A stretch of 63,972 nucleotides of DNA, counting the filler, from Choristocarpus tenellus KU-1152 (taxonomy: Eukaryota; Protista; Phaeophyceae), in the NCBI GenBank assembly GCA_964200185.2. It is 10 parts of 10 records of this genome, joined end to end, with 100 filler letters (N's around TTAATTAATTAA, not from the genome) between each part and the next. Parts side by side here need not be neighbours in the genome. Positions count along the whole stretch, not along the records: positions 36,583 to 49,103 come from CAXNAD020001812.1; 9 more parts are not named here. One strand, 5' to 3'. How positions within the stretch are numbered: position 1 is the first letter of the stretch; the number at the start of each line of letters is the position of its first letter. The translations under genes were made by a program, and so were the position numbers. Of the stretch, positions 36,483 to 49,203 are shown piece after piece. Under the pieces are notes generated by a model, which saw only the letters and a program-made list of their open reading frames with translations, did no database searches and was not told the DNA's origin.

Positions 36483-36589
36483 NNNNNNNNNNNNNNNNNN
36501 NNNNNNNNNNNNNNNNNNNNNNNNNNTTAATTAATTAANNNNNNNNNNNNNNNNNNNNNNNNNNNNNNNNNNNNNNNNNNNNCAAGCCC

Positions 36590-36713
36590 TACAAATGTAT
36601 ATATTTTACCTACTACGAAACATTTTGGAGTCGGAAAATGTCATAAAAAAATCCATGGGAAGCCAAGCCCCACAAACAGGGAAAAATTCGTACCCTCTAA
36701 GATAATTTCACTC
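36590..36713 (+). mobile_element. MITE family A, partial
   Basis: Right half and TIR at the contig start. Confidence 0.75.
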
Positions 36714-37801
36714 ACATTCTAGACGACCAGAGGGAGCATATCTGAAGCAAGAGAGAAAAGGGATGAAATATGGTTATGTCTACAACAAAGGTGATAAATG
36801 AAAAACTTCAGAAATAAGTGAACTATATACAGTGCGAGCAGAAGCTGCATGCCAAGGCATGTTACCCATTGATCCTTGCGTGTTCCACATTCAGACCCAA
36901 AGTTGTAGTGAATTTTCTGCAGTCAGCCTGTCATCACATAATACAACCAAGCAAGAGCAGAGCCGGTTGACTTTCAACTAATCCTTCCCAGATTTGCATG
37001 TATGTGATTGCATAAAAATATATATTCCAAAGAACCTTGGATCCACCTCGCTTCCATGATATCTATCCTGTCTAACAAAAAAGGAAATTGCACAATGTAC
37101 ATCCAGTCCACGGAGAAAGGCATACCAAGGAACCTTCTAACACCGCAACAATTTACAGGCACATTTTCACAATGAGGTGAAGGGTATATGAAATTTCTGA
37201 AAGTTTAAGGAAAAATAATGTTTTCCTTACGGTACTAAACATGCTATGTGTGGCAGTTTGATCAGTGAGACGGTATGGATATCAGGGGAGACATCAATGG
37301 CACAATAATTTTGAAACTGCACCACCCTAAGTTTCATATAATCTTACCACTCCACCCATTCTTGTTTCACAAAAGCGACAATTGATTCAGTGACCACCTG
37401 AAAAGCTCCCAACAGCACTCCTCAGTAGGGGTTATTCATGGTTGCGAATCAGGGGGAACTGAGCACTACCAAGCATCAACAACACACAAGAACACGACTA
37501 GACTCCCATCCCTGCGAGATTTACCTATCATAAGCCACCTTGATGGGCAATCAATACAAAGAGCTCAGCTAGTCGTGTTCACAACAGCATGATCATATTT
37601 ATGGACAAAAGAATACACTGCTGTATTCCATAGGTTTAGCTCGAAGGATCAGTGGCAACTAGAGCAATCATATTACTAGCTGCCTCCCACAAAAAAAAAA
37701 ACTCTTCACACCGAAGGAACATTTCTTCACCAGGCTAGAACTTTGTTGGGTCAACGACATGTTTGCAAATATGGGAACCAGCTTCACTTTGCTGCAACAC
37801 C

Positions 37802-40800
37802 TCAGTTCACACTATATACCACCATGTATGTCGGAATTGCAGCTTCTTCTTTGTAGACCACCACCTCATCATAGTTCAGGCTGGGTCCAACCTGGATGAA
37901 GCAGGATAGGGGGGAACCAGATCGATTAAATTCTGTATTGGTCTCAAATCTGGAACATCAAGGCTTTGCTGCTGTCCTCAACTGTCACTAGTTACGATTG
38001 ACTTCACGAGAAGAAAAAAACGAAATGTGATGCATTCAGTGATGAAGATCCCTACGGACAAAGGGTAGATAGCACGTAAGAAAATAGCACAAAAAGGACA
38101 CGTCAAATTCAGGTGTACATATGGCCACTCACAATAGCCAGATTGAGAAAAGGATCAGCTTCAGCTTCCTAAGCTCTGAACTTCGAATATTAACTCACTG
38201 GCCTATACCCCTACACTACAGTTCTACAGTTACACTGATCAAGACAGGAGTCTTCCCAACCTTCACTCCAACCACACACCCACCAAAAAATTTGAGCTGA
38301 TCGTAAAAGAAGAGGAGAGAAAGAGTGTGACATAGCCAAATCATTTAAGGGGGTAGGGTCACGTCCGTTTGGGGTCCAAAATCCAATGCTGTCGTTTTGA
38401 TGAAGTTTGGCTATCGTGTTTGTTAGCAAGTGTCGATATCCTTATTCCAGACTCACCTTTTCATACATCTTAGGTAACTGTGTTCACACAGAAAACCGAA
38501 AAAGGGTAAAAAACCCTGCGGGAAGCCAAGCCCCAAACAGACAAACAGGGCAAAATTCCACAGTGATTTACTGCTCATCCCAGGTGGGTTCATGGCATTC
38601 ATCTTACCTGTCCGTGGAGGTGTGGTTCCCTATCTGAAGGGCAAGTAGACAGGTAAAAACTCGTTCAACAGCATCACTCACCTCACCCACCACAGAGTCG
38701 TATCCTTGCGGTGGACACTCTGTATCAGGCAGTGAGCCTGATTTGGTCTTGTATGCCTTCCCTGACACAACCGTACACATAAACATGCACCGATAAGTCT
38801 TACCATCAGCCACCTGAACCAGAAAACAAGAGCAAGGAAAGTCCGCACACAGAGTTACAAATATCACGAACTGCACAAAGGAGCTTATAGCTGATTGTCA
38901 TAGTATTATGTCTGCCTTCACAAGTATGAGAAACTCTATGACAGGGTATAAAGATGGTTTTAGTTTAGTTGACAGTATAGTGTGACAAAGAAAAAAACTG
39001 CTGACAGTGGATGTGGAAATACTTGTACCAATTGGGGTAAATGCACAGTGGCATACTACTCCTTCAACTGCTCCTTTCCAGGATGGTGAAGGAACTTTTC
39101 AGATTAGTCCCTGAGCTGCAAAGATGCCTTCAATATAAACCACTGAGCCTACACTGAAGACATTAAACTTGAATAAAAAGCATCCTGTCCTGATGTAGTC
39201 GAGCAGATATGAAGTGGCTGATTGCAAATAGGAATGAAATAGAAGGTGAAGAGGATTATCATTGTGCTGTTGTTCAAGAGGCCTGTGTATCAGGGACATT
39301 TCAAAACATTCCGGTCCTTCATAAGGCAGGCATACGCAAGTAGTTAAGTCCTTGGGAAAGATTGGCTCCAATGTTTTCTGGCATTCCAGGCTAGGTCCAC
39401 CAACTATTGGAACCTGTCAAGTTTGCGGACTGGACAGGTTCCAATATTTTCTGACATGCCTGGACAAGGTCCAACCAAGTCGGTAACGGTCTGGTAAGCG
39501 TGACAGACAGGTTCAATTCTGGGCTGTATTCCAAGTTCAACGGACCAGTCCGGTTGGTCTGTCCAGTTTCCATGTAAAATTGTCTGCAAAACACCAATAT
39601 AAACAAGAAATATACTCAGTATATAACAACAGCCAGGACCCGTAACGTAAACACACAAGGGTGAGCATATGTGTGATATGAAGGAGAGTTGCTCCTGGAT
39701 ATCACCTACAGATGGTTTGAGCTGACCAATCAGGCATCAGTACCTTTTCTCAAGATCTTGTTGCAGTTATTTCAGAAGAGCTATTTGTTTGAGATAAGAA
39801 GAGGCAGTACGGGTCACACATGGAGAGTCAGATGGATAAACAGGAATGACATGGTATGTGCGTGATGGGCACCTAGAAATTTTGTAAGGGTTGCTTCACA
39901 TAATGAGTTACTTCTGCTGAACGCATACGGCTGTACGTTATGAGTAGTATTGCATAGGAGTGAAGCGCACAACATATAGTGTGTAACAGACAGAAATCTA
40001 CTGGGTTTGTACAGTATACTAGCAGCACATATATAGTGGGTTGCTCGGCAAGACTTGTCTTGGCTAGGCTGGTCATGAGCAATTGTTTCTGACAGGGTCA
40101 TTCCATGGCAATCAACTATTTCAAACACCATGGAAACATGATGGTCAACGTTGGTGCGAATACTGTATGATGTTCAACCATATTTAGTCCATACCATCTT
40201 TTATCCATGACAACATCTGTCCATTACACTGTAACACCTGATGCCCATATAAAGTTGGGGTCAATTTGCTCTATAAAATGTCCATTGTCCTGCACCAGGC
40301 TTGGCACTTAACGTCTGTTTTCAGGGCAATGCTCAGAGCCATTTGCTGATGAAGCACTCTCCAAAGCGCCAAACTTGGGAGTTTTCGACAACATTTTAAA
40401 ATGCCAATTCCGCCTCGTTCAAAAGGCAAAGAAAACCCCCCCCCCGTTCATTGTGTGGGACAACACTTGCACTCATTTGCTCTCTATAGCTCCTGTTGTC
40501 AACACTATGCTTTGTTGCGTGTAGCACAAAGATGTCAAATTGCATTGCGCAATTACTATGCCTGAGGTGTGAAATATTGCCTGGAGGTTGTTTGTTGCTG
40601 TATATTCTCACCTTTGAGGAACCAACAGCGTAGTCATTGGACTTTCCTGACACAGAAGAGAAGTATAGACCTTTGCCATAACGCAAGCCAATGCTTGTTC
40701 GCCGGGCCGTACCACCCACTCCCTTAAAAGTGAAGCCATGAGTGCAGATGCTACACACATTGCAATCTGTCCTTGTGCAGGGGCCTCTCTGCTCAACAAA

Positions 40801-42451
40801 ACAAGGAGATGGGGGGATGGATGGATGGATGGATGACGTAAGAAATTTTCCTTTTTTTTTTTTCTTTCTCAGTTTCTGAAACATTGCACTTGTGCTGTTT
40901 TTCTATCATTTACTTCTTTCTTGCGACAAGATTTGAATCTTGACATTACTTCTAAAATTGTGCAAATACTACCTTCAAATTGAGACTGAAAAGGGGTCTG
41001 GGCTATAGGTGAAGGAACACAGCAAAAATGCTTCTATCAGGAATTGGATGTCTACCACCATGAACTTGCCGTAAGGTCAGTGAAGAAGCCACAGTCTCTC
41101 GAAGCACTTGTCCCATGGAAACGCCGCACTTTGTTCATTGTGCCAGTGTATGCTTTGTGCCTTTCTTCAACATCATCCTGCACCTGCCACCATCCATGTT
41201 GTCAGTGTTATGTGAGGTGTCAAGGATATAGTTTCATAACCCTGGGAGGTTGGGGTTGAGACCATGGCTGCTCCTCCAAGTCTGCTCGATGCAGTGTGGG
41301 ATTACCATGCCTTTTGAAAGAAAACATGCAAGGGTCCACCAACCTATCCCTTTGTAATTACTTCTGACACAATGAAGTACACAGAAGTCGTATGGGAGTG
41401 CACAATAAAAATACTGATATTATAGGGAGAGGGACTCGATCCTGCTATCAAACGACTGAGTATTAAATTTCAAATTGGCAGGTACCATCATCAAGGTGAC
41501 ACGAGGACATATTTCCACGACTAACCTGGATCTTAAAAACCCTTTCCACTGTAGGAACGGGGACATCTTTCTTGCCCCATTTTGAGATGAATTGATTCCG
41601 TACACTGATGAAGGCCTTGTGCGAAGGAAGGAGGAGGCTCAGCGAGAAGTTGGAAGTACCGCCAGTGCTCCCGTAAAAGACGCGATCTATAAACCCCCCT
41701 TCTTTGGCGTGACCCCGGCTGCAGTATGGGGACTCCTAGAGATGGAAATGCGCAAGAAAAAAAAGGACAATTATCCCCCTTGCCTTGCTGGCATTGTTAC
41801 CAGCTGTTACTCTGCTGAATCTGCTGAGACGCAACTTTGACTTTCAAGGACCAGACATACCTCTCCAGTGTTTGGGTCATGACATCTTGATTTTGTACAA
41901 CCCGAGAGTGCACATGTGCCTTTAACAGGTTGTTGAACTCCGGTCATTTCACTTGCGTGCGACCTGCAGCAAAACTGATGACATCGTCCGCTTGCCTCCA
42001 CATGGACCTCATTGAAACAGCCAGGGAGCTGGCAAACCTGCAACTGGGGTCGTATGAACTATACCTGTTAGTACAACATAGACATGAACGTCCCAGAGGC
42101 GGCGTCTTCAGGGATGACAAGAAGGAGGAGTGAGACGGTGATATCAATTCATAAAACACAGGATATATTAACATGATCGAAGCTGCAACTCCTTCCTTTT
42201 CCTATGACTAGTTTTGATCCAACAATCGAAAATATGCAGAATCCATCCAGGCAGGGTCTAGTTTTGAGCTGCATAAGATGAGGGCAACCGTCGACAAAAG
42301 ATCATACATGGGTCCCATGGGCAGGAGCCCGACCTCCTCTACCAGTGGCCTCGTATGCATGAGTTTTTCCGCAGTAAGCATGCCCTTCGTAGCATGGTCT
42401 TTCACAGCCATGAAGACCGCAAGTGGGTGTCATCACGCTTCTCCCAGCCAT
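37802..42451 (-). CDS. PARP-like (H-Y-E) ADP-ribosyltransferase with three N-terminal Cx4C...Cx3H putative zinc-binding motifs, 347 aa
   Basis: Manual splice: complement(join(37802..37891,38682..38813,40612..40788,41070..41183,41526..41735,41861..42037,42308..42451)) = 1044 nt, open from ATG to TGA. Five GT-AG introns and one GC-AG intron. Catalytic motifs: RRFHGT (H), RYGKGLYFSSVSGKSNDY (Y), MFMCTVVSGK, PPQGYDSVVGE, LNYDEVVVYKEEAAIPTYMVVY (E). N-terminal motifs: CGLHGC..YCGKTHA, CQLPGC..FCCRSHA, CALSGC..YCSRGHA. Confidence 0.9.
38333..38560 (+). mobile_element. MITE family A, diverged, inside the last intron of the PARP-like gene
   Basis: GTCCGTTTGGGGTCCAAAATCCAATG...GGAAGCCAAGCCCCAAACAGACAAACAGGGCAAAATT. 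Confidence 0.75.
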
Positions 42452-42601
42452 GTGGCTTCACAATTGCAATGTACCTTATCCAGTTGCGAAAGTGGAGAAG
42501 AGATATTCGTTGGGAAGAAGGTGAATGTGAGATGTAGCATCAATAGTACAATGGCTTGCTTAGTAGTAGGCAAATATATCCATCCATAAAAGGATAAAAA
42601 A
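42452..42601. promoter_or_regulatory. putative compact bidirectional promoter and 5' UTRs between the PARP-like and NADAR genes
   Basis: Only 150 bp separate the two divergent ATGs. No specific motif identified, so this is inferred from geometry. Confidence 0.5.
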
Positions 42602-44564
42602 ATGTCTATACCAAATCCCCAGACAAGATGGTCTCAAATGAAGTCATCGATGAGATCCACATGTAGGTGTAGGTTACAAGGCTGTGACAAAAAGGCATAC
42701 GTCGAGATAAGCGGTCGTGAGCACAACTTCTGCTGTCATTCTCACGCACGTGAGTTTGAAGGCAAAAAAGTGCGAAGGGGAAAGAGGTCGACAAGGAATG
42801 AAGCATCAAGCCCCCAATTATTAATAGATCAAGATACGGAGAAGGCAAGTCGTGTGGAATCAAGAGTTTTCTACCCAGGAGTAGGACAAGGGATAAGCAC
42901 ATTTCTTCAGAAGAGAGTGATGGAGGTCGGTCGTAAGAGAGGGAAACAAGAGCCGAGGACGGGGGGTAATAGAGCTGCCAGGCTGGAGACTATCAGGCAG
43001 CACGAAGAAGTCTTGGATGGTACAGGGGTTGTGGAGACGAATGATATGGTTCTTTTCTGGAAACCACCTGCACCCTTTGTGCAGTGGACTCCTTCTCCTT
43101 TCTACGTCAATGGGGTGAGTACGAGTTCATTACACAAACGTCCCAGTATCAAAGGGGTTTCCGTTGCATCTCATCTTCCAACACCTAATGAAAAGTATTA
43201 TCTTTCACACCGGCGTTGATCTCTCTCAGTCACCTGCGTGAATTACATCATACTTGTTGGGTTAAATTTTAAAACAAGCCACCATCTTCTACAACTTTAA
43301 CAGTTTGTCCTTCACGTTCACGGACGGTGGGTGCTATAGCTGCGTTGCAGGTGGCCACAGTTGTTGATCTGATACCCCGCACTTTTTTTCGAGGGTAGGC
43401 TTGTAGGGTCGTCTAGCCCCCCTCCGTTTGACTTAACCGATGGGTTACATCTGATGAATAGTTATTCGTCTGTAGGACCTTGCATGTTGTGTCCACTGTC
43501 CTACACCAAACGAGTTGTTTTTTCCGTTCTCATAGCTGTACTTCATTTGTACTTGCCTTGTATTTGTGCGGTAGCAAGTCCCTGACAGGTCTGTGAAGGT
43601 GTCGTTACCCTGCCCTGCACGATTCCATCACCTCTCATTCCCCCACCCCGCAACTCGGCCAGGTGAAGTATTCGTGTGCCGAGCAATTCATGATGGCCAG
43701 CAAAGCAAGGTTGTTCGAGGACAGCACTACCCTTCGGGCGATTATGAGGACAGACAATCCTGAAGGGCAGAAAGCTCTTGGACGGCAAGTGGCCCATTTT
43801 GATAATAGGTTGTGGGAGAAATAACGGGAGCGTATGGTCAAGGTGGGGAACTACAACAAATTTACACAGAATCGTGACCTTCAGAGGCAGCTCCTTGACA
43901 CCAACCAAAAGGTAAGAGAGCATCTGGCTGAAACTGTTTGTAAGTGTGTTGTCCAATGACAGGAGTGCTAAAGATGGTCTCGGTCACACCCTTGATATAG
44001 AGTGGGTTGCTACTGCCATGTTCTAATACATTCAATCTCTCAGGGGTGCAACCAAATTCCATCCAATGATGTAGGCCATTTTCGGCGGACTGATACTCAG
44101 TGTGTCTCCTGCAGCATGCTAAGCAAATCGGGCTCCACATTGGCTCCAAAGATCCTGCCCATATTGTATGACTCATGGTTGGAGACTGTTACGGTCTTGT
44201 GCCCCTGCCTTCCTGACCCTCTTGGCCACCTCAGATTCTCGTGGAAGCAAGCCCCTTCGATAAGGTGTGGGGCATTGGCTTGAGCGCCGACAACCCTGCC
44301 TCCAGAGATATGAGGCAATGGAAAGGTGAAAACAAGCTGGGTAAAGCACTCATGGCAGTTCGTGAACAGATAATATTTGAAAATAAGCAAAACAGAAGGC
44401 CTTCGACGTCTAGTGCACCTGCTGGAGGAGGCATGGATAATGGCCAGGGTGTACGAAATTTGCAAATGGGGGGTAAGTTGGATGGTAACCATGGTGAGGG
44501 ATGGAAGAGGCAAAGTGGGAAAAAACATTTTTTTTCTCTTTCTGTCAGTTTTCCATTGTGGTAA
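42602..44564 (+). CDS. NADAR/YbiA (DUF1768) family hydrolase with an N-terminal Cys/His motif; one in-frame TAA (possible pseudogene, allele or sequencing error)
   Basis: join(42602..43114,43663..43911,44235..44564), GT-AG introns. NADAR motifs: VLFW..PFVQWTPSPFYVNG|VKYSCAEQFMMASKARLF, QKALGRQVAHFD..W, NYNKFTQNRDLQRQLLDT, ILVEASPFDKVWGIG, WKGENKLGKALMAVRE. TAA at 43822..43824 in exon 2. The start ATG and the C-terminal tail are less certain. Confidence 0.88.
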
Positions 44565-47500
44565 AGCCCATAGGAAGAGTTTCATTAGATGTTGGAGCAG
44601 CTTCGTGACCATTCTCACTTGTGCTAAGCAGTTAAAATAAGGCCATCCTTAGGGATGGTCCACCATTTGATCTTGAAATTCCTGATTCATGGCAAGTAAG
44701 AAATTGGACGTGGGTAGCAGGATATGATGCTATGGAACTTACCATGAACTGTGTAAGTATTTCAACTCATGATTCACTTCTTGTGTCGCGATATAATAAC
44801 ATACACCACCGGCCTACTGTTTTTGCTTCTTGTATATGCGGGTTTGTATAGTTGTTGTGAACTGGGCTGGTTAGATGAGTGGTAATAGAAATGTTGTGTG
44901 TGCAATGTTGAGACCATGTTGGGAAATGAATTGCGGTTGTTTCTTGTTCTATTGATAGGAGGATTCACACACTTGTAGAAATGAGGTGTAAGTTCTCCAG
45001 TATTGGTCGGAAAGGCTAGAGACTGTCCATGTAGATTTAAGTGTGAGGGAGGGGGGGCTTATAGGTAATAAATAGGAGTGAAGGAAACTGATGGCAGTTT
45101 CTTCCTGCTCAGTGACACACACCCTGCGCCCGCAATACAGTTCCAAGGAATTATCCTTGCAAATCCAAGTTCATTGGAGATCCCCCACTAGAAATGCGCC
45201 TGAGTACAATGAAGCCAATGACTGCTATCGTTCTTTCATTTCCGACTCCATCTCCAATACCCGTTAGAAGTTGAGCATGTTTGCCTTCTGTTACTACTAT
45301 TGCTGTGCAGAATACCCTCTCACATATCTGCTCCTACTCCTGCACCTGCTGTAGGTATTAGCTATTACCTTGGGGTAAAGGTATTTTGGCAACCCATGTC
45401 ACAGTGGTAATCATAAGAATTGTACAATCCTCACCCCCACATCTTTGAGCAAAGGTGCTCTTGCAATCTGATAGAGGTATAGTGCCTACGTGTTGTTGAT
45501 GACATGACCTTCCAATATGCAGTCCTTTTGTACTTTACGAAGTGTATTGATCTGTGCTTAACTAAATGCCATCAATGAACAGATTTTAATGTGGTATCAT
45601 AAGAGCTCTGTTGTACGCAAGATGGATAGCTCAACAAATTATTGCCTCTCCTTGTCATTGTCGCTGTAAATGTTACTGTGACACCGTTTCCAAATTATAA
45701 AGCGGTTTTGACTTATTTAGCAACTCCAGTGCATCCAATCACCTCAGTTGATCAGTGCAAAAGGAGGTGCATTTCTTTATATATGGATATGTGTAAACCA
45801 GGCAGGCACATTTCAAATTCTCACCCTTTGAAAGTTCCTAGGTGGTATTGCTAGTTCGTACTTGGGACATAAGTTCTGTTACAGTGTCTTTTATTTGAGC
45901 TGTGGGTAGGGACAGCTTGCAAGTAAGAGGAGGGCATTTTGCTCTCCTCAGCAAACAAGTTAATGCCTTTGGAGACAGTCTACTGGGAGCACAAACCTTG
46001 GACCTGGCTTCTGTTGATCGATCCGAAAAATATTTATTGTGGGAATTGAGCATCTCTGCGCGTGCAGTGATGCCCCACCCCAACCTTTCTAATGAAAGGA
46101 TTTCAGCACAGTTGTACATTTTTCCAATTTGTGTTTATGATTCATGTAAGATGCAGTCAATAACATGTGTTTTACGACAACTGCAATACATACTGAATAC
46201 ATACATTGTGTATGTGCTCTATGTGTTCCAAATGTTTCGGGTGCGAGTAAATAAAAAGCCTTTAAGACACAAATACTTCTGAAATCCTTGTGCTACACAG
46301 CATGTCCCTACAAGATTGTGGCTTTCCATGACCAGGCAGTGTACTTTTAAAGATTTTGAGTGCATGTTGGATTTTTTGTAGATGTCAAAGTTACTGCGTA
46401 TGTCACATCTGCAATTGAATCGTGATTTTATGTACCTGACTGGGGGTCAAAGCAATTAAGGGGTAGGCAGGTTTGGACCCTTTTGCATTCTAAGTCATCT
46501 TTCCTTGTGCACAGTGTTGTATGCAAAATTGTCACTCCCACTTTGCCCCTGCAAAGTGACACCACAATTGAGCAAATGCTCCTTCTACAAAATGGTGTAT
46601 TTTTACCCTTTCTTGGGATGCTTAGAATACAACACTGCTGACATCTCAATCGATTTGGACTCTGATTAACCAAGAACCTATGTATGGTTGGAGAGGAGGC
46701 TGGGGGGCACCTGTCTTGAAGGTACACATGGAATACATAGAGGAAGTTGGATAAAAAGCTGTGCAGAGGATTGGTGTTACCAAATGATGAGTAGATCATA
46801 AATGTATTTGAACATGGACTTGGAGGAGTAGATGAGTTTGGTTGTGGCCTCCTCACCCAACTTTCACTATCTTGATGTGTTTAACCATGGTGCTCATTTC
46901 CACCATTCTTACGTAGCTTGATCTCAGTGCTGACTCTGGGAATCGTACCACACTCCCTTTTCTTGAACCATGCGCAGTGGCGACATTCACTTTCTACGAA
47001 TACAAGTGTTAGTTTATTCTTTTCTAAATGAGCTAACTGAAGTGCATCCACAAAGCCCTACCAGCTGGATCTTTTGTGTTGCAATGCCAACCCTCTCTTA
47101 ACACCGTTTGGAACACAATTGGAGATTTCTTTGTGTGATAATGCATGCAAATTCCTACCCTTCTACCTTATATGTAGATTGACGAAACTCTTAAAAGAAG
47201 AAAATTCTCGAGTAAGTGTTAGAAGTGTATAAATTACAAAAAATATGTATTGAACCCTCAACGGTCGTATTTCTCTGGAGTGTTTGGCTACATTTGACCT
47301 ATGACATCCGTTATTCATTGCAATTTCACCTTGGAAAACAAAACGCTCAACGTTATCATTTCCCTATAATGCTCGGCGGTATTCGAACTACAACGTTAAC
47401 TGTTGATTACGATGTCCACCAGTTTTCTCTAGTACTCACAATATCCGTTACTAGGAGGACAAGGTCCTGGAGTCGGTTGATCAAAAATGCCTATTGTATA

Positions 47501-47943
47501 ACACAAAGGCTTTCGCATAACGCCCGTTGTCAAGGTTTGGTGCACTTTGCTTCTTACCAACACTTCTTCAGGAAACACTTGACATCGTTTGGTTCAAATA
47601 GATGTTTCACAAAGGGGTGCAATTACGTACATATATATTCTTCCATCTACAACTTTGATTTTTCTAGGAAGGGAATCCATAAATTCTTAGTTCACCCAGA
47701 AACAGGTGTTTGGGGAAGAATATGGTGCGTCATTTGAATTTCTTGTGAACATGTTTAAGAGACGTGCGGGTATACGGACCACCAAACGAAATCTATCTCA
47801 CTGATGGCTACAGTTTAAGATGAATAAAACTAGATGTGGTTGAACCATATCCCACATGAAACCGTCTACGTCATCTCTAAATGGGTAACAAATCAGGCAC
47901 CAGCTTAAAACGAGTCATCAACAAGGTAGGATGGGGGAGGTGG

Positions 47944-48200
47944 GAGTCAAAGCAAGCGAGAGGTGCCCAGGTTTTGGACGTTTTTCATTTTAAACCAGTT
48001 TTTTCATCTTTTGCAATTCACCCATATTTGTATGGATGAACTGCCAAGTTTGACTGGAGAGTGTTGATTTCTCTGTTGATTGAGACTTTCAACAGAATTC
48101 AGAAAGCTTCCTATTTGAATTTGTTAAAAAGGCGAAGTTTGCACCTATTTGTCAACCTCCTTAAAATGCTACCCTCAGTACCTCTCGCATACTTTGACTC
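47944..48200. mobile_element. MITE family C
   Basis: GAGTCAAAGCAAGCGAGAGGT...ACCTCTCGCATACTTTGACTC. Confidence 0.8.
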
Positions 48201-49203
48201 TGAACGTGGAAGTTGAAGGATTGGTGATACAGTTTTGAATCATATACGGATGTCAAGTTCGACATAGATTATGGAACATATCTGCATGTAGTACCTTCAT
48301 TGTGGAGTATTTGATTGGTTTTAAAGGGTTGGGTGTTTGGAAAATCATCTTGTTGAAGATGTGGTTAGAGGACATATTTGATCGAGTAAGTGAAGGTAGA
48401 AGAGTACAATGCTGAAGGTTACGCGTTGTCTTTTTCCTTGTATGGCACGTGTTGTTGACGTAGCGTCGTTGAACTGGATGGTCGTCTGCATTTATTTGTT
48501 GTACAGGTTCATTGCAGCAAGCGGCAAACGACACTCCAGGAGTCAACATTCGACACATGAACCATTTGATCACCTCATGTGCAAGCAGGGAAAATATCTG
48601 ACTTGGTGAAGTTGTTACCAAGAAAAGGGGGGAGGATGTAAGCATGAAGCACACTCACTCTTGTAACCACGGAAACCACTATTAACGCTGTGGAATTACG
48701 GCTTGATCAGGGCCGGAAGAAACAAGATTCCCTAGAGGTGGGGATACAAGAAAGTGAACGGACTCCTAAATTCCCTTTTTGGACTTCCTGAAAAGGATTC
48801 CTCATGCGTTGCTGGAGGTTAGTAATTTAGTAACCTGTCAAGAATTGGAGGTTTGTGGACAAAGAGTTTATTATGAAAGATAATTACTGTAATGATTGTT
48901 ATATTGATACAAATATTTACGAAGACACTTGAATTTCTTGTGTTCCCCTCATCGATCAAAATATTGTTGTGAAACGATCCGCCTTCAGCTAATACAAGTA
49001 TTACATTTGAACTGATATTTATGCGAATCGCGTGATTCTGTGGCGGCGTGGTTCACTCAGGCAAGGGTGGTGAAGAGAATCACCAGGCAAGATGGTCCAG
49101 ACGNNNNNNNNNNNNNNNNNNNNNNNNNNNNNNNNNNNNNNNNNNNNTTAATTAATTAANNNNNNNNNNNNNNNNNNNNNNNNNNNNNNNNNNNNNNNNN
49201 NNN

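Follow-up and report, generated by a model that had tools for sequence, protein, structure and literature searches.

Why should two neighbouring genes of a brown alga, encoding enzymes of unrelated folds, carry the same short Cys/His motif? The question is raised by a 63,972-nucleotide stretch of DNA (the window) from assembly GCA_964200185.2 of Choristocarpus tenellus KU-1152, in which a minus-strand gene encodes an ADP-ribosyltransferase (ART) of the PARP type, with three such motifs ahead of its catalytic domain, and a divergent plus-strand gene encodes a fourth motif followed by a NADAR domain. Both genes lie on one contig of 12,521 bases (positions 36583-49103), a complete record of that assembly. 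A protein deposited from the contig is labelled C. tenellus, an early-branching brown alga, and the DNA is eukaryotic in character, with intron-split genes and a G+C content of 39-49%. A first inspection of the DNA (the sequence-only reading) had described the motif as a near-identical N-terminal module and taken its presence on both enzymes as an argument against chance adjacency. Our preferred interpretation, to which we give a probability of roughly 0.6, is that all four motifs belong to one conserved module family and that the shared finger would aim an ADP-ribose writer and an ADP-ribose eraser at a common target, in a locus where the NADAR frame is broken.

The first step was to delimit the four copies. 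ART module 1, located by six-frame motif scan and alignment, is a short form (C-x4-C-x10-C-x3-H-A; 42356-42421, minus strand). ART module 2 (41954-42034, minus strand) and the NADAR module (42668-42748, plus strand), both placed by motif scan, BLASTP and module scoring, are long forms with a doubled Cys ('CC' forms); the NADAR copy has an extra upstream Cys and was in addition modelled with AlphaFold2. ART module 3 is divided between a first half at 41860-41914, which runs up to intron 41735-41859, and a second half at 41706-41734 that holds the [FY]-C-x3-H-A part and was derived from the splice and the model translation (both on the minus strand). This intron was removed in transcript contigs, and the joined module is present in the deposited ART protein P0070. 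No further unsplit copy was found in a six-frame scan of the piece.

ART module 2 is the copy that matches the NADAR module. From first Cys to His the two are 26 residues each (41957-42034, minus strand; 42668-42745, plus strand), and 15 of the 26 are identical without a gap, or 16 of 27 when the following Ala is included. The latter count reproduces that of the sequence-only reading, which had also given the coordinates and sequences of the matching motifs correctly and had listed two more ART copies that proved real (42359-42421, up to the His, and 41860-41914 joined to 41706-41734, all minus strand). Its claim of a shared module stood; the term 'near-identical' did not, at 59% identity, and the matching ART copy is the second of three, not the first. 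In a BLASTP comparison of ART exon 2 with NADAR exon 1, 18 of 32 residues were identical (56%, expect value (E) 8e-11). At the DNA level 46 of the 78 bases agreed, with 10 of 26 at third codon positions, and no inverted DNA repeat was detected; therefore the likeness is old and has been kept at the protein level.

Expression of the modules was followed in three public sequencing runs (X1-X3), all from one study and probably made from the assembly's own material. Run X2 is RNA-like, its kind being unrecorded: eight intervals bounded by GT..AG or GC..AG are missing from its contigs, and its depth is far greater in exons than in introns. The spliced contigs contain all four modules; in particular, the NADAR motif is not spliced out, since the contigs include it with exon 1 joined to exon 2.

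To what family do these motifs belong? Searched against 1.84 billion proteins, a profile built from the four copies recovered 391 at E <= 1e-3, of which 96 also passed E <= 1e-10; in most of the 391, three stretches were matched. This bears out the view that one homologous module is present on two unrelated enzyme folds. Here and below, database searches were done exon by exon, and the joined (spliced) models were used in local scripts only. The 504 module instances collected from 217 family proteins have the consensus C-x-L-P-G-C, then a loop of 16 residues (283 cases) or 10 residues (67 cases), then [FY]-C-x3-H-A. The Cys, Cys, Cys and His columns are each at least 90% conserved. Brown algae (Ectocarpus and others), the dinoflagellate Polarella, Dictyostelium, Nematostelium and Marchantia account for the named members. 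A 957-kb giant-virus-like contig of IMG/VR encodes a 103-residue open reading frame (ORF) made up of hardly more than two modules (L006:3986-4297), found with a narrow module alignment; a viral scan with query P0004 gave no match. The two-module viral ORF adjoins a gene for a 1227-residue SNF2/ResIII helicase.

Partner domains were inspected in the best 150 of the 391 profile matches. Pfam detected PARP in 28 of them and RING types in about 20; three carried NAC and two carried ankyrin, while NADAR, TruD, a 3'-5' exonuclease, an RNase H-like domain, LOTUS and BTB occurred once each. By BLAST, the ART region that follows the modules was common to 37 of the 150. A row of three modules followed by a PARP domain is therefore the standard architecture. 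The enrichment for ADP-ribose enzymes that the sequence-only reading had asked a profile search to look for was thus observed, PARP being the commonest partner. The module was not mentioned in the PARP surveys examined. In the Marchantia polymorpha protein P0150, a NAC-domain transcription factor, three modules are N-terminal.

The module is predicted to be a C-C-C-H zinc finger, related to described fingers and outside the Pfam models tested. In an AlphaFold2 model of the NADAR copy, built with 143 aligned modules (mean predicted local distance difference test score, 83), a short hairpin leads into a helix whose first residues are the last Cys/His pair, and the predicted fold is a knuckle, a beta-hairpin and a helix beginning at C-x3-H. 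This model and the four near-invariant ligand positions uphold, as a prediction, the zinc-finger-like character first proposed. The window modules gave no Pfam match at E <= 1; single modules of the family gave weak matches to EsV-1-7 (16 of 143), zf-CGNR, the WRKY19 finger, zf-FCS, RPAP2/Rtr1 and CxC6.

The first of these matches raises the question of whether the module is a divergent member of the brown-algal, virus-linked EsV-1-7 repeat family (PF19114; the IMM family of Ectocarpus). The resemblance is considerable: EsV-1-7 is a short Cys/His repeat and proposed zinc finger that starts with C-x3-G-C and ends with [FY]-C-x-x-H-A, occurs in tandem copies, is abundant in brown algae and is present in giant viruses, as the two-module viral ORF suggests for our module. 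The best of the weak single-module matches to PF19114 had an E of 5e-4, and the one whole protein compared, P0032, scored 12.9 bits, below the gathering score of 25 bits. Neither the window modules nor the viral ORF matched PF19114 at E <= 1. The EsV-1-7 spacing, reportedly set out by Macaisne and co-workers in 2017, is said to be C-x4-C-x16-C-x2-H. ART module 2 and the NADAR module fit this pattern literally by way of their CC doublet, whereas the family spacing is C-x3-H (474 of 504 modules). EsV-1-7 is greatly expanded in brown algae (bioRxiv 10.1101/2024.02.19.579948), which would favour membership; in contrast, EsV-1-7 proteins of Ectocarpus are reported to carry no other Pfam domain (bioRxiv 10.64898/2026.04.27.720984), whereas our module is fused to PARP, RING, NADAR and other domains, enzymes among them. 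The module is moreover found in a liverwort, in amoebozoa and in a dinoflagellate, while EsV-1-7 is reported to be absent from land plants. Membership of the EsV-1-7 family is rather doubtful.

Among solved structures, the best meaningful match to the profile was the C3H finger of yeast Spp1, a COMPASS protein (PDB 6J2P; E 0.0017). This finger has the ligand spacing of the short module form, C-x4-C-x10-C-x3-H, and superposed in Foldseek with a root-mean-square deviation (rmsd) of 1.9 A over 32 columns. It differs in being a single copy packed on a PHD finger, and the structural scores are not significant at such a small domain size. RPAP2, whose RPAP2/Rtr1-type finger has the form C-x4-C...C-x3-H, appeared in the VIA-align list for the module. 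The long form with its 16-residue loop has no solved counterpart. Fold searches returned mostly small zinc fingers (Rlp24/eL24, which headed the Foldseek list, TOX4, Spp1, A20, MYND, RPAP2 and FCS), with the weak scores to be expected of 39 residues. With FCS/MYM fingers, TRASH-like ribbons and CxC6 the module shares a small, putatively zinc-binding fold and an [FY]-C-S-like second half; unlike them, it starts with C-x4-C instead of C-x2-C and its last ligand is His. Between two and five family members matched zf-FCS (PF06467) weakly (E 1.5e-4 to 4e-3), and the window modules did not. Likewise, ART exon 1, which holds the short form, had no match to CxC6 (PF18721) at E <= 1, while the short-form relative P0008 passed the CxC6 cut-off (38.7 versus 27.5 bits). 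By shape, the best match in the ESM Atlas was a cluster of PARP-domain proteins, mostly from Basidiomycota (template modelling score 0.85, rmsd 1.1 A); an Atlas search with query P0001 gave nothing beyond a lead of 0.76. The range of the module probably takes in fungi also, while the module pattern was not found in the ART homologues of Sphaeroforma and of the fungus Cetraspora.

The ART gene is intact, with seven exons on the minus strand and a frame open over 349 residues. Exon 1 (42308-42451) begins with the ATG at 42451, has an in-frame stop two codons 5' of it, and holds module 1; it was defined by translation and by the splice 42043/42308 in X2. Exon 2 (41860-42043), which carries module 2 and the first half of module 3, and exon 3 (41524-41734) were placed by X2 splices and translation, P0070 covering exon 2 from residue 70. 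Exon 4 (41070-41181) supplies the His of the H-Y-E triad, the deposited model reaching 41066, and exon 5 (40609-40788), bounded by X2 splices and entered at 40784 in the deposited model, supplies a Cys cluster and the triad Tyr. Exon 6 (38682-38810) lies beyond a 1.8-kb intron (X2 joint 38810/40609), and P0070 ends there. Exon 7 (37802-37891; coding part 37891-37805) supplies the triad Glu and a TGA stop at 37802-37804; its placement is based on a loose X2 contig end at 38680 that matches 37864-37889, together with the frame and the stop. P0070, a partial protein of 252 residues, is an exact substring of our ART model after a 4-nt shift of one intron.

The ART product consists of three N-terminal Cys/His modules (residues 11-32, 52-78 and 92-119) followed by a PARP catalytic domain. 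The exon-5 ORF scored 22.1 bits against Pfam PARP (PF00644; E 1.2e-4), below the cut-off of 26.7 because it is a fragment; PF00644 is present on P0070. The closest solved catalytic domains are those of tankyrases (homologue P0084, E 1e-8), and through P0084 the His, Tyr and Glu, all included in the spliced model, were aligned with the tankyrase triad; the Cys cluster ahead of the Tyr loop is common to both. The ART differs from tankyrases in lacking ankyrin and SAM regions, its N-terminus being made of the three modules, and the only proteins that reach about 35-55% identity to it are uncharacterised ones of algae and protists, its brown-algal homologues standing at 47-55%. Judged by sequence, this ART is an ordinary member of the three-modules-plus-PARP architecture.

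Intron 4 of ART exists in two in-frame versions set 4 nt apart (40785-40788 and 41066-41069). In the X2 contig a GC..AG intron, 40789-41069, was removed to give T-R-G-P-C, while P0070 uses a GT..AG intron, 40785-41065, and reads T-A-S-P-C.

The divergent start codons of ART and NADAR are separated by a spacer of 150 bp (42452-42601). One X2 contig (42308-43118) crosses the spacer unbroken, through both first exons; therefore the ART and NADAR transcribed regions meet or overlap. NADAR exon 1 (42602-43114, plus strand; defined by its ORF and the X2 splice 43114/43663) encodes the module and, after a charged linker, the beginning of the NADAR domain. Used as a query, it gave no match in a word-based protein search or in a PDB sequence search, and no usable match in an ESM Atlas feature search. 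Exon 2 (43663-43911; X2 splices) matched Pfam NADAR with an E of 3.4e-14 and PDB 8bau with an E of 2e-4, and exon 3 (44235-44564; X2 splice) matched Pfam NADAR with an E of 4e-14. Against PF08719 these two gene fragments scored 53.9 and 53.6 bits, above the cut-off of 35.1. Exon 3 carries the last strand of the domain, a W-G-x-G motif and a TAA stop. That strand reads I-L-V-E-A-S-P and so contains the Glu that marks the YbiA subfamily of NADARs (PMC11125620).

The NADAR frame is not continuous through the domain. It is interrupted at codon 225 by an in-frame TAA (43822-43824, plus strand), which was identified by translation; it separates two well conserved segments of the domain, and the position itself varies among relatives. 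Since this codon lies in mid-domain, the full-length eraser is probably not made in the sequenced strain, although a product of 224 residues, comprising the module and part of the NADAR domain, could be. The sequence 3' of the TAA has kept 60-75% identity to bacterial NADAR cores, so that the break, by this comparison, looks recent. The deposited NADAR model, P0233 (136 residues), starts at an ATG just past the TAA (43834 onward), and because of this start it lacks the module and half of the domain, a point of consequence for annotation. P0233 also has a donor near 44473 and a different last exon, while the X2 contig continues unspliced to at least 44640.

Two other accounts of the TAA were rejected. 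Reassignment of stop codons is unlikely because ART terminates at TGA and has no internal stops. A sequencing error was rejected because the same bases were read in the three runs; no base variant was seen at 43822-43824 in X1-X3, which, coming from a single study, are not independent.

How did the NADAR gene come by its module? The sequence-only reading had suggested a local inverted duplication across the promoter, and several features would agree with it: some 700 bp separate the two copies, which lie on opposite strands and belong to one subtype, and the BLASTP identity reaches 56% over 32 residues. Doubled-Cys modules (F-C-C-x-x-H) in three-module arrays stand at position 2 in 33 of 41 cases and often have a further Cys directly before them, and both ART module 2 and the NADAR copy are of this type. 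When the NADAR copy was scored against the family, three modules of other organisms (115, 105 and 105) came before ART module 2 (104, rank 4 of 507); ART module 2 in turn scored 118 with foreign position-2 modules, against 104 with the NADAR copy. Therefore the 16/27 identity reflects a shared subtype and, as far as these sequence scores indicate, not a recent local duplication. The third-position agreement of the two copies is about chance level, and this, with the failure to detect an inverted DNA repeat and the higher scores of foreign modules, ruled against the duplication, which is in our view very unlikely.

The preferred reading, a shared targeting finger, can be stated as follows. All four motifs represent a single conserved module of about 30-38 residues, from a family widespread among eukaryotes that usually has three tandem copies ahead of a tankyrase-like PARP domain or a RING finger. 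A YbiA-type NADAR gene has acquired a single position-2-type copy at its N-terminus. The module would act as a targeting or adaptor finger and bring the fused catalytic domain to a common partner, be it a nucleic acid or some protein mark, so that the ADP-ribose writer and the NADAR eraser might act on the same target, by analogy with bacterial ART-NADAR pairs. On this analogy the shared-targeting function is plausible; it is attractive because the known pairs act on one substrate, as writer-eraser units (PMC11543638, PMC11125620).

The bacterial pairs have been characterised as toxin-antitoxin systems (PMC11125620, PMC11543638), and no eukaryotic ART-NADAR pair was found in the literature surveyed; most NADARs in published work are free-standing domains. 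As in DarT1-NADAR and YarT-YbiA, the ART gene of the window adjoins a NADAR gene, with 150 bp between the start codons, and as in YarT-YbiA the NADAR has the YbiA-type Glu in its last strand; YarT, too, belongs to the H-Y-[E/D/Q] clade of ARTs (PMC11125620). The differences are substantial. The pair described here is eukaryotic, has introns and is divergent instead of forming an operon; its ART has a tankyrase-like PARP domain and is neither a DarT nor a YarT; an additional, predicted zinc-finger module is present on both partners; and a stop codon breaks the NADAR frame.

Several observations weigh against a shared target. The module is found also on RING, NAC, TruD, ankyrin, exonuclease and RNase H-like domains and might serve as an adaptor of general use, not specially linked to ADP-ribose, and a single old fusion may be the ancestor of the numerous PARP fusions. 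The ART-NADAR adjacency was seen only once: no NADAR was found within 10 kb of three homologous ART loci (one in Scytosiphon, two in Ectocarpus), and the homologous ARTs of these genera lie in PARP gene clusters or among unrelated genes. On average the module carries a net charge of about +0.5, no indication that it binds nucleic acid, and the structural matches are all below significance. The ADP-ribose that NADARs are known to remove is base-linked, whereas the marks typical of tankyrase-like enzymes are protein-linked. Finally, since the NADAR gene is broken, any coupling of ART and NADAR may be vestigial.

Part of this evidence would also suit chance neighbours, that is, a promiscuous adaptor carried by each gene for unrelated reasons, only a bidirectional promoter being shared. 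The diversity of partner domains, the three brown-algal ART loci without a NADAR neighbour, a NADAR module that resembles foreign modules at least as much as it does ART module 2, and a NADAR already in decay are all expected under such an account. It explains less well why PARP is the commonest partner, why both genes are expressed from one 150-bp spacer, and why the fusion of NADAR with the module was found twice independently, in the window and in P0131; ART-NADAR gene pairs are besides an established functional unit in bacteria (PMC11125620). Chance adjacency is therefore a possibility to be taken seriously, if an unlikely one.

P0131, among the best 150 of the 391 matches, has the reverse order, NADAR first and then two modules, and its fusion is independent of that in the window. 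It is a protein of 260 residues (L001:409-1191) encoded on a densely packed, bacterial-looking contig, with DsbD-like, AbiEii, peptidase S9 and SET-domain genes among its neighbours; it may represent a eukaryote-like domain in a host-associated bacterium.

A different role for the module was also considered, in which modules bind each other and NADAR docks on ART and restrains it, in the manner of DarG and DarT. By way of analogy, direct binding of antitoxin to toxin has been discussed for DarTG (PMC11125620), and the common subtype of the NADAR copy and ART module 2 would be compatible with such pairing. The three tandem copies per chain in most members fit a multivalent binder of something else. 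We consider this homotypic interaction very improbable.

A shared targeting finger would turn the locus into a concrete hypothesis, one finger for one target, in a rare eukaryotic arrangement where a PARP-type writer adjoins a NADAR eraser. Whatever its ligand, the module defines a domain family with no Pfam model, present in at least 391 protein clusters and mainly on ADP-ribosyltransferases and RING ligases. WWE is a known ADP-ribose reader domain, and the PARP and RING partners of the module recall, by analogy, those of WWE. A bolder proposal is that this uncharacterised zinc-finger family reads a nucleic-acid mark or a mark of the ADP-ribose/ubiquitin type, and that the two genes form a eukaryotic PARP-NADAR writer-eraser cassette with one target. 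We regard this as a long shot; if true, the cassette would be a eukaryotic counterpart of the bacterial DarT-NADAR and YarT-YbiA systems, and brown algae might use it in conflicts with giant viruses, which also encode the module.

Some minor observations concern the ART family and the introns of the window gene. In Scytosiphon promiscuus, four or five ART-related PARP-domain genes stand in tandem on a 23-kb contig (L003), which suggests a lineage-specific expansion of this family in brown algae. In intron 4 of the window ART, a (GGAT)5 repeat followed by a T-run (40815-40878) was passed over as repetitive in the read analysis. At position 39795 all three runs have C in place of T. Within the 1.8-kb intron 5, the interval 39395-39473 is a point where several DNA contigs of X1 and X3, unrelated to one another, terminate or fork and where depth climbs from about 17 to 27, so that a short dispersed repeat is suggested at that site.

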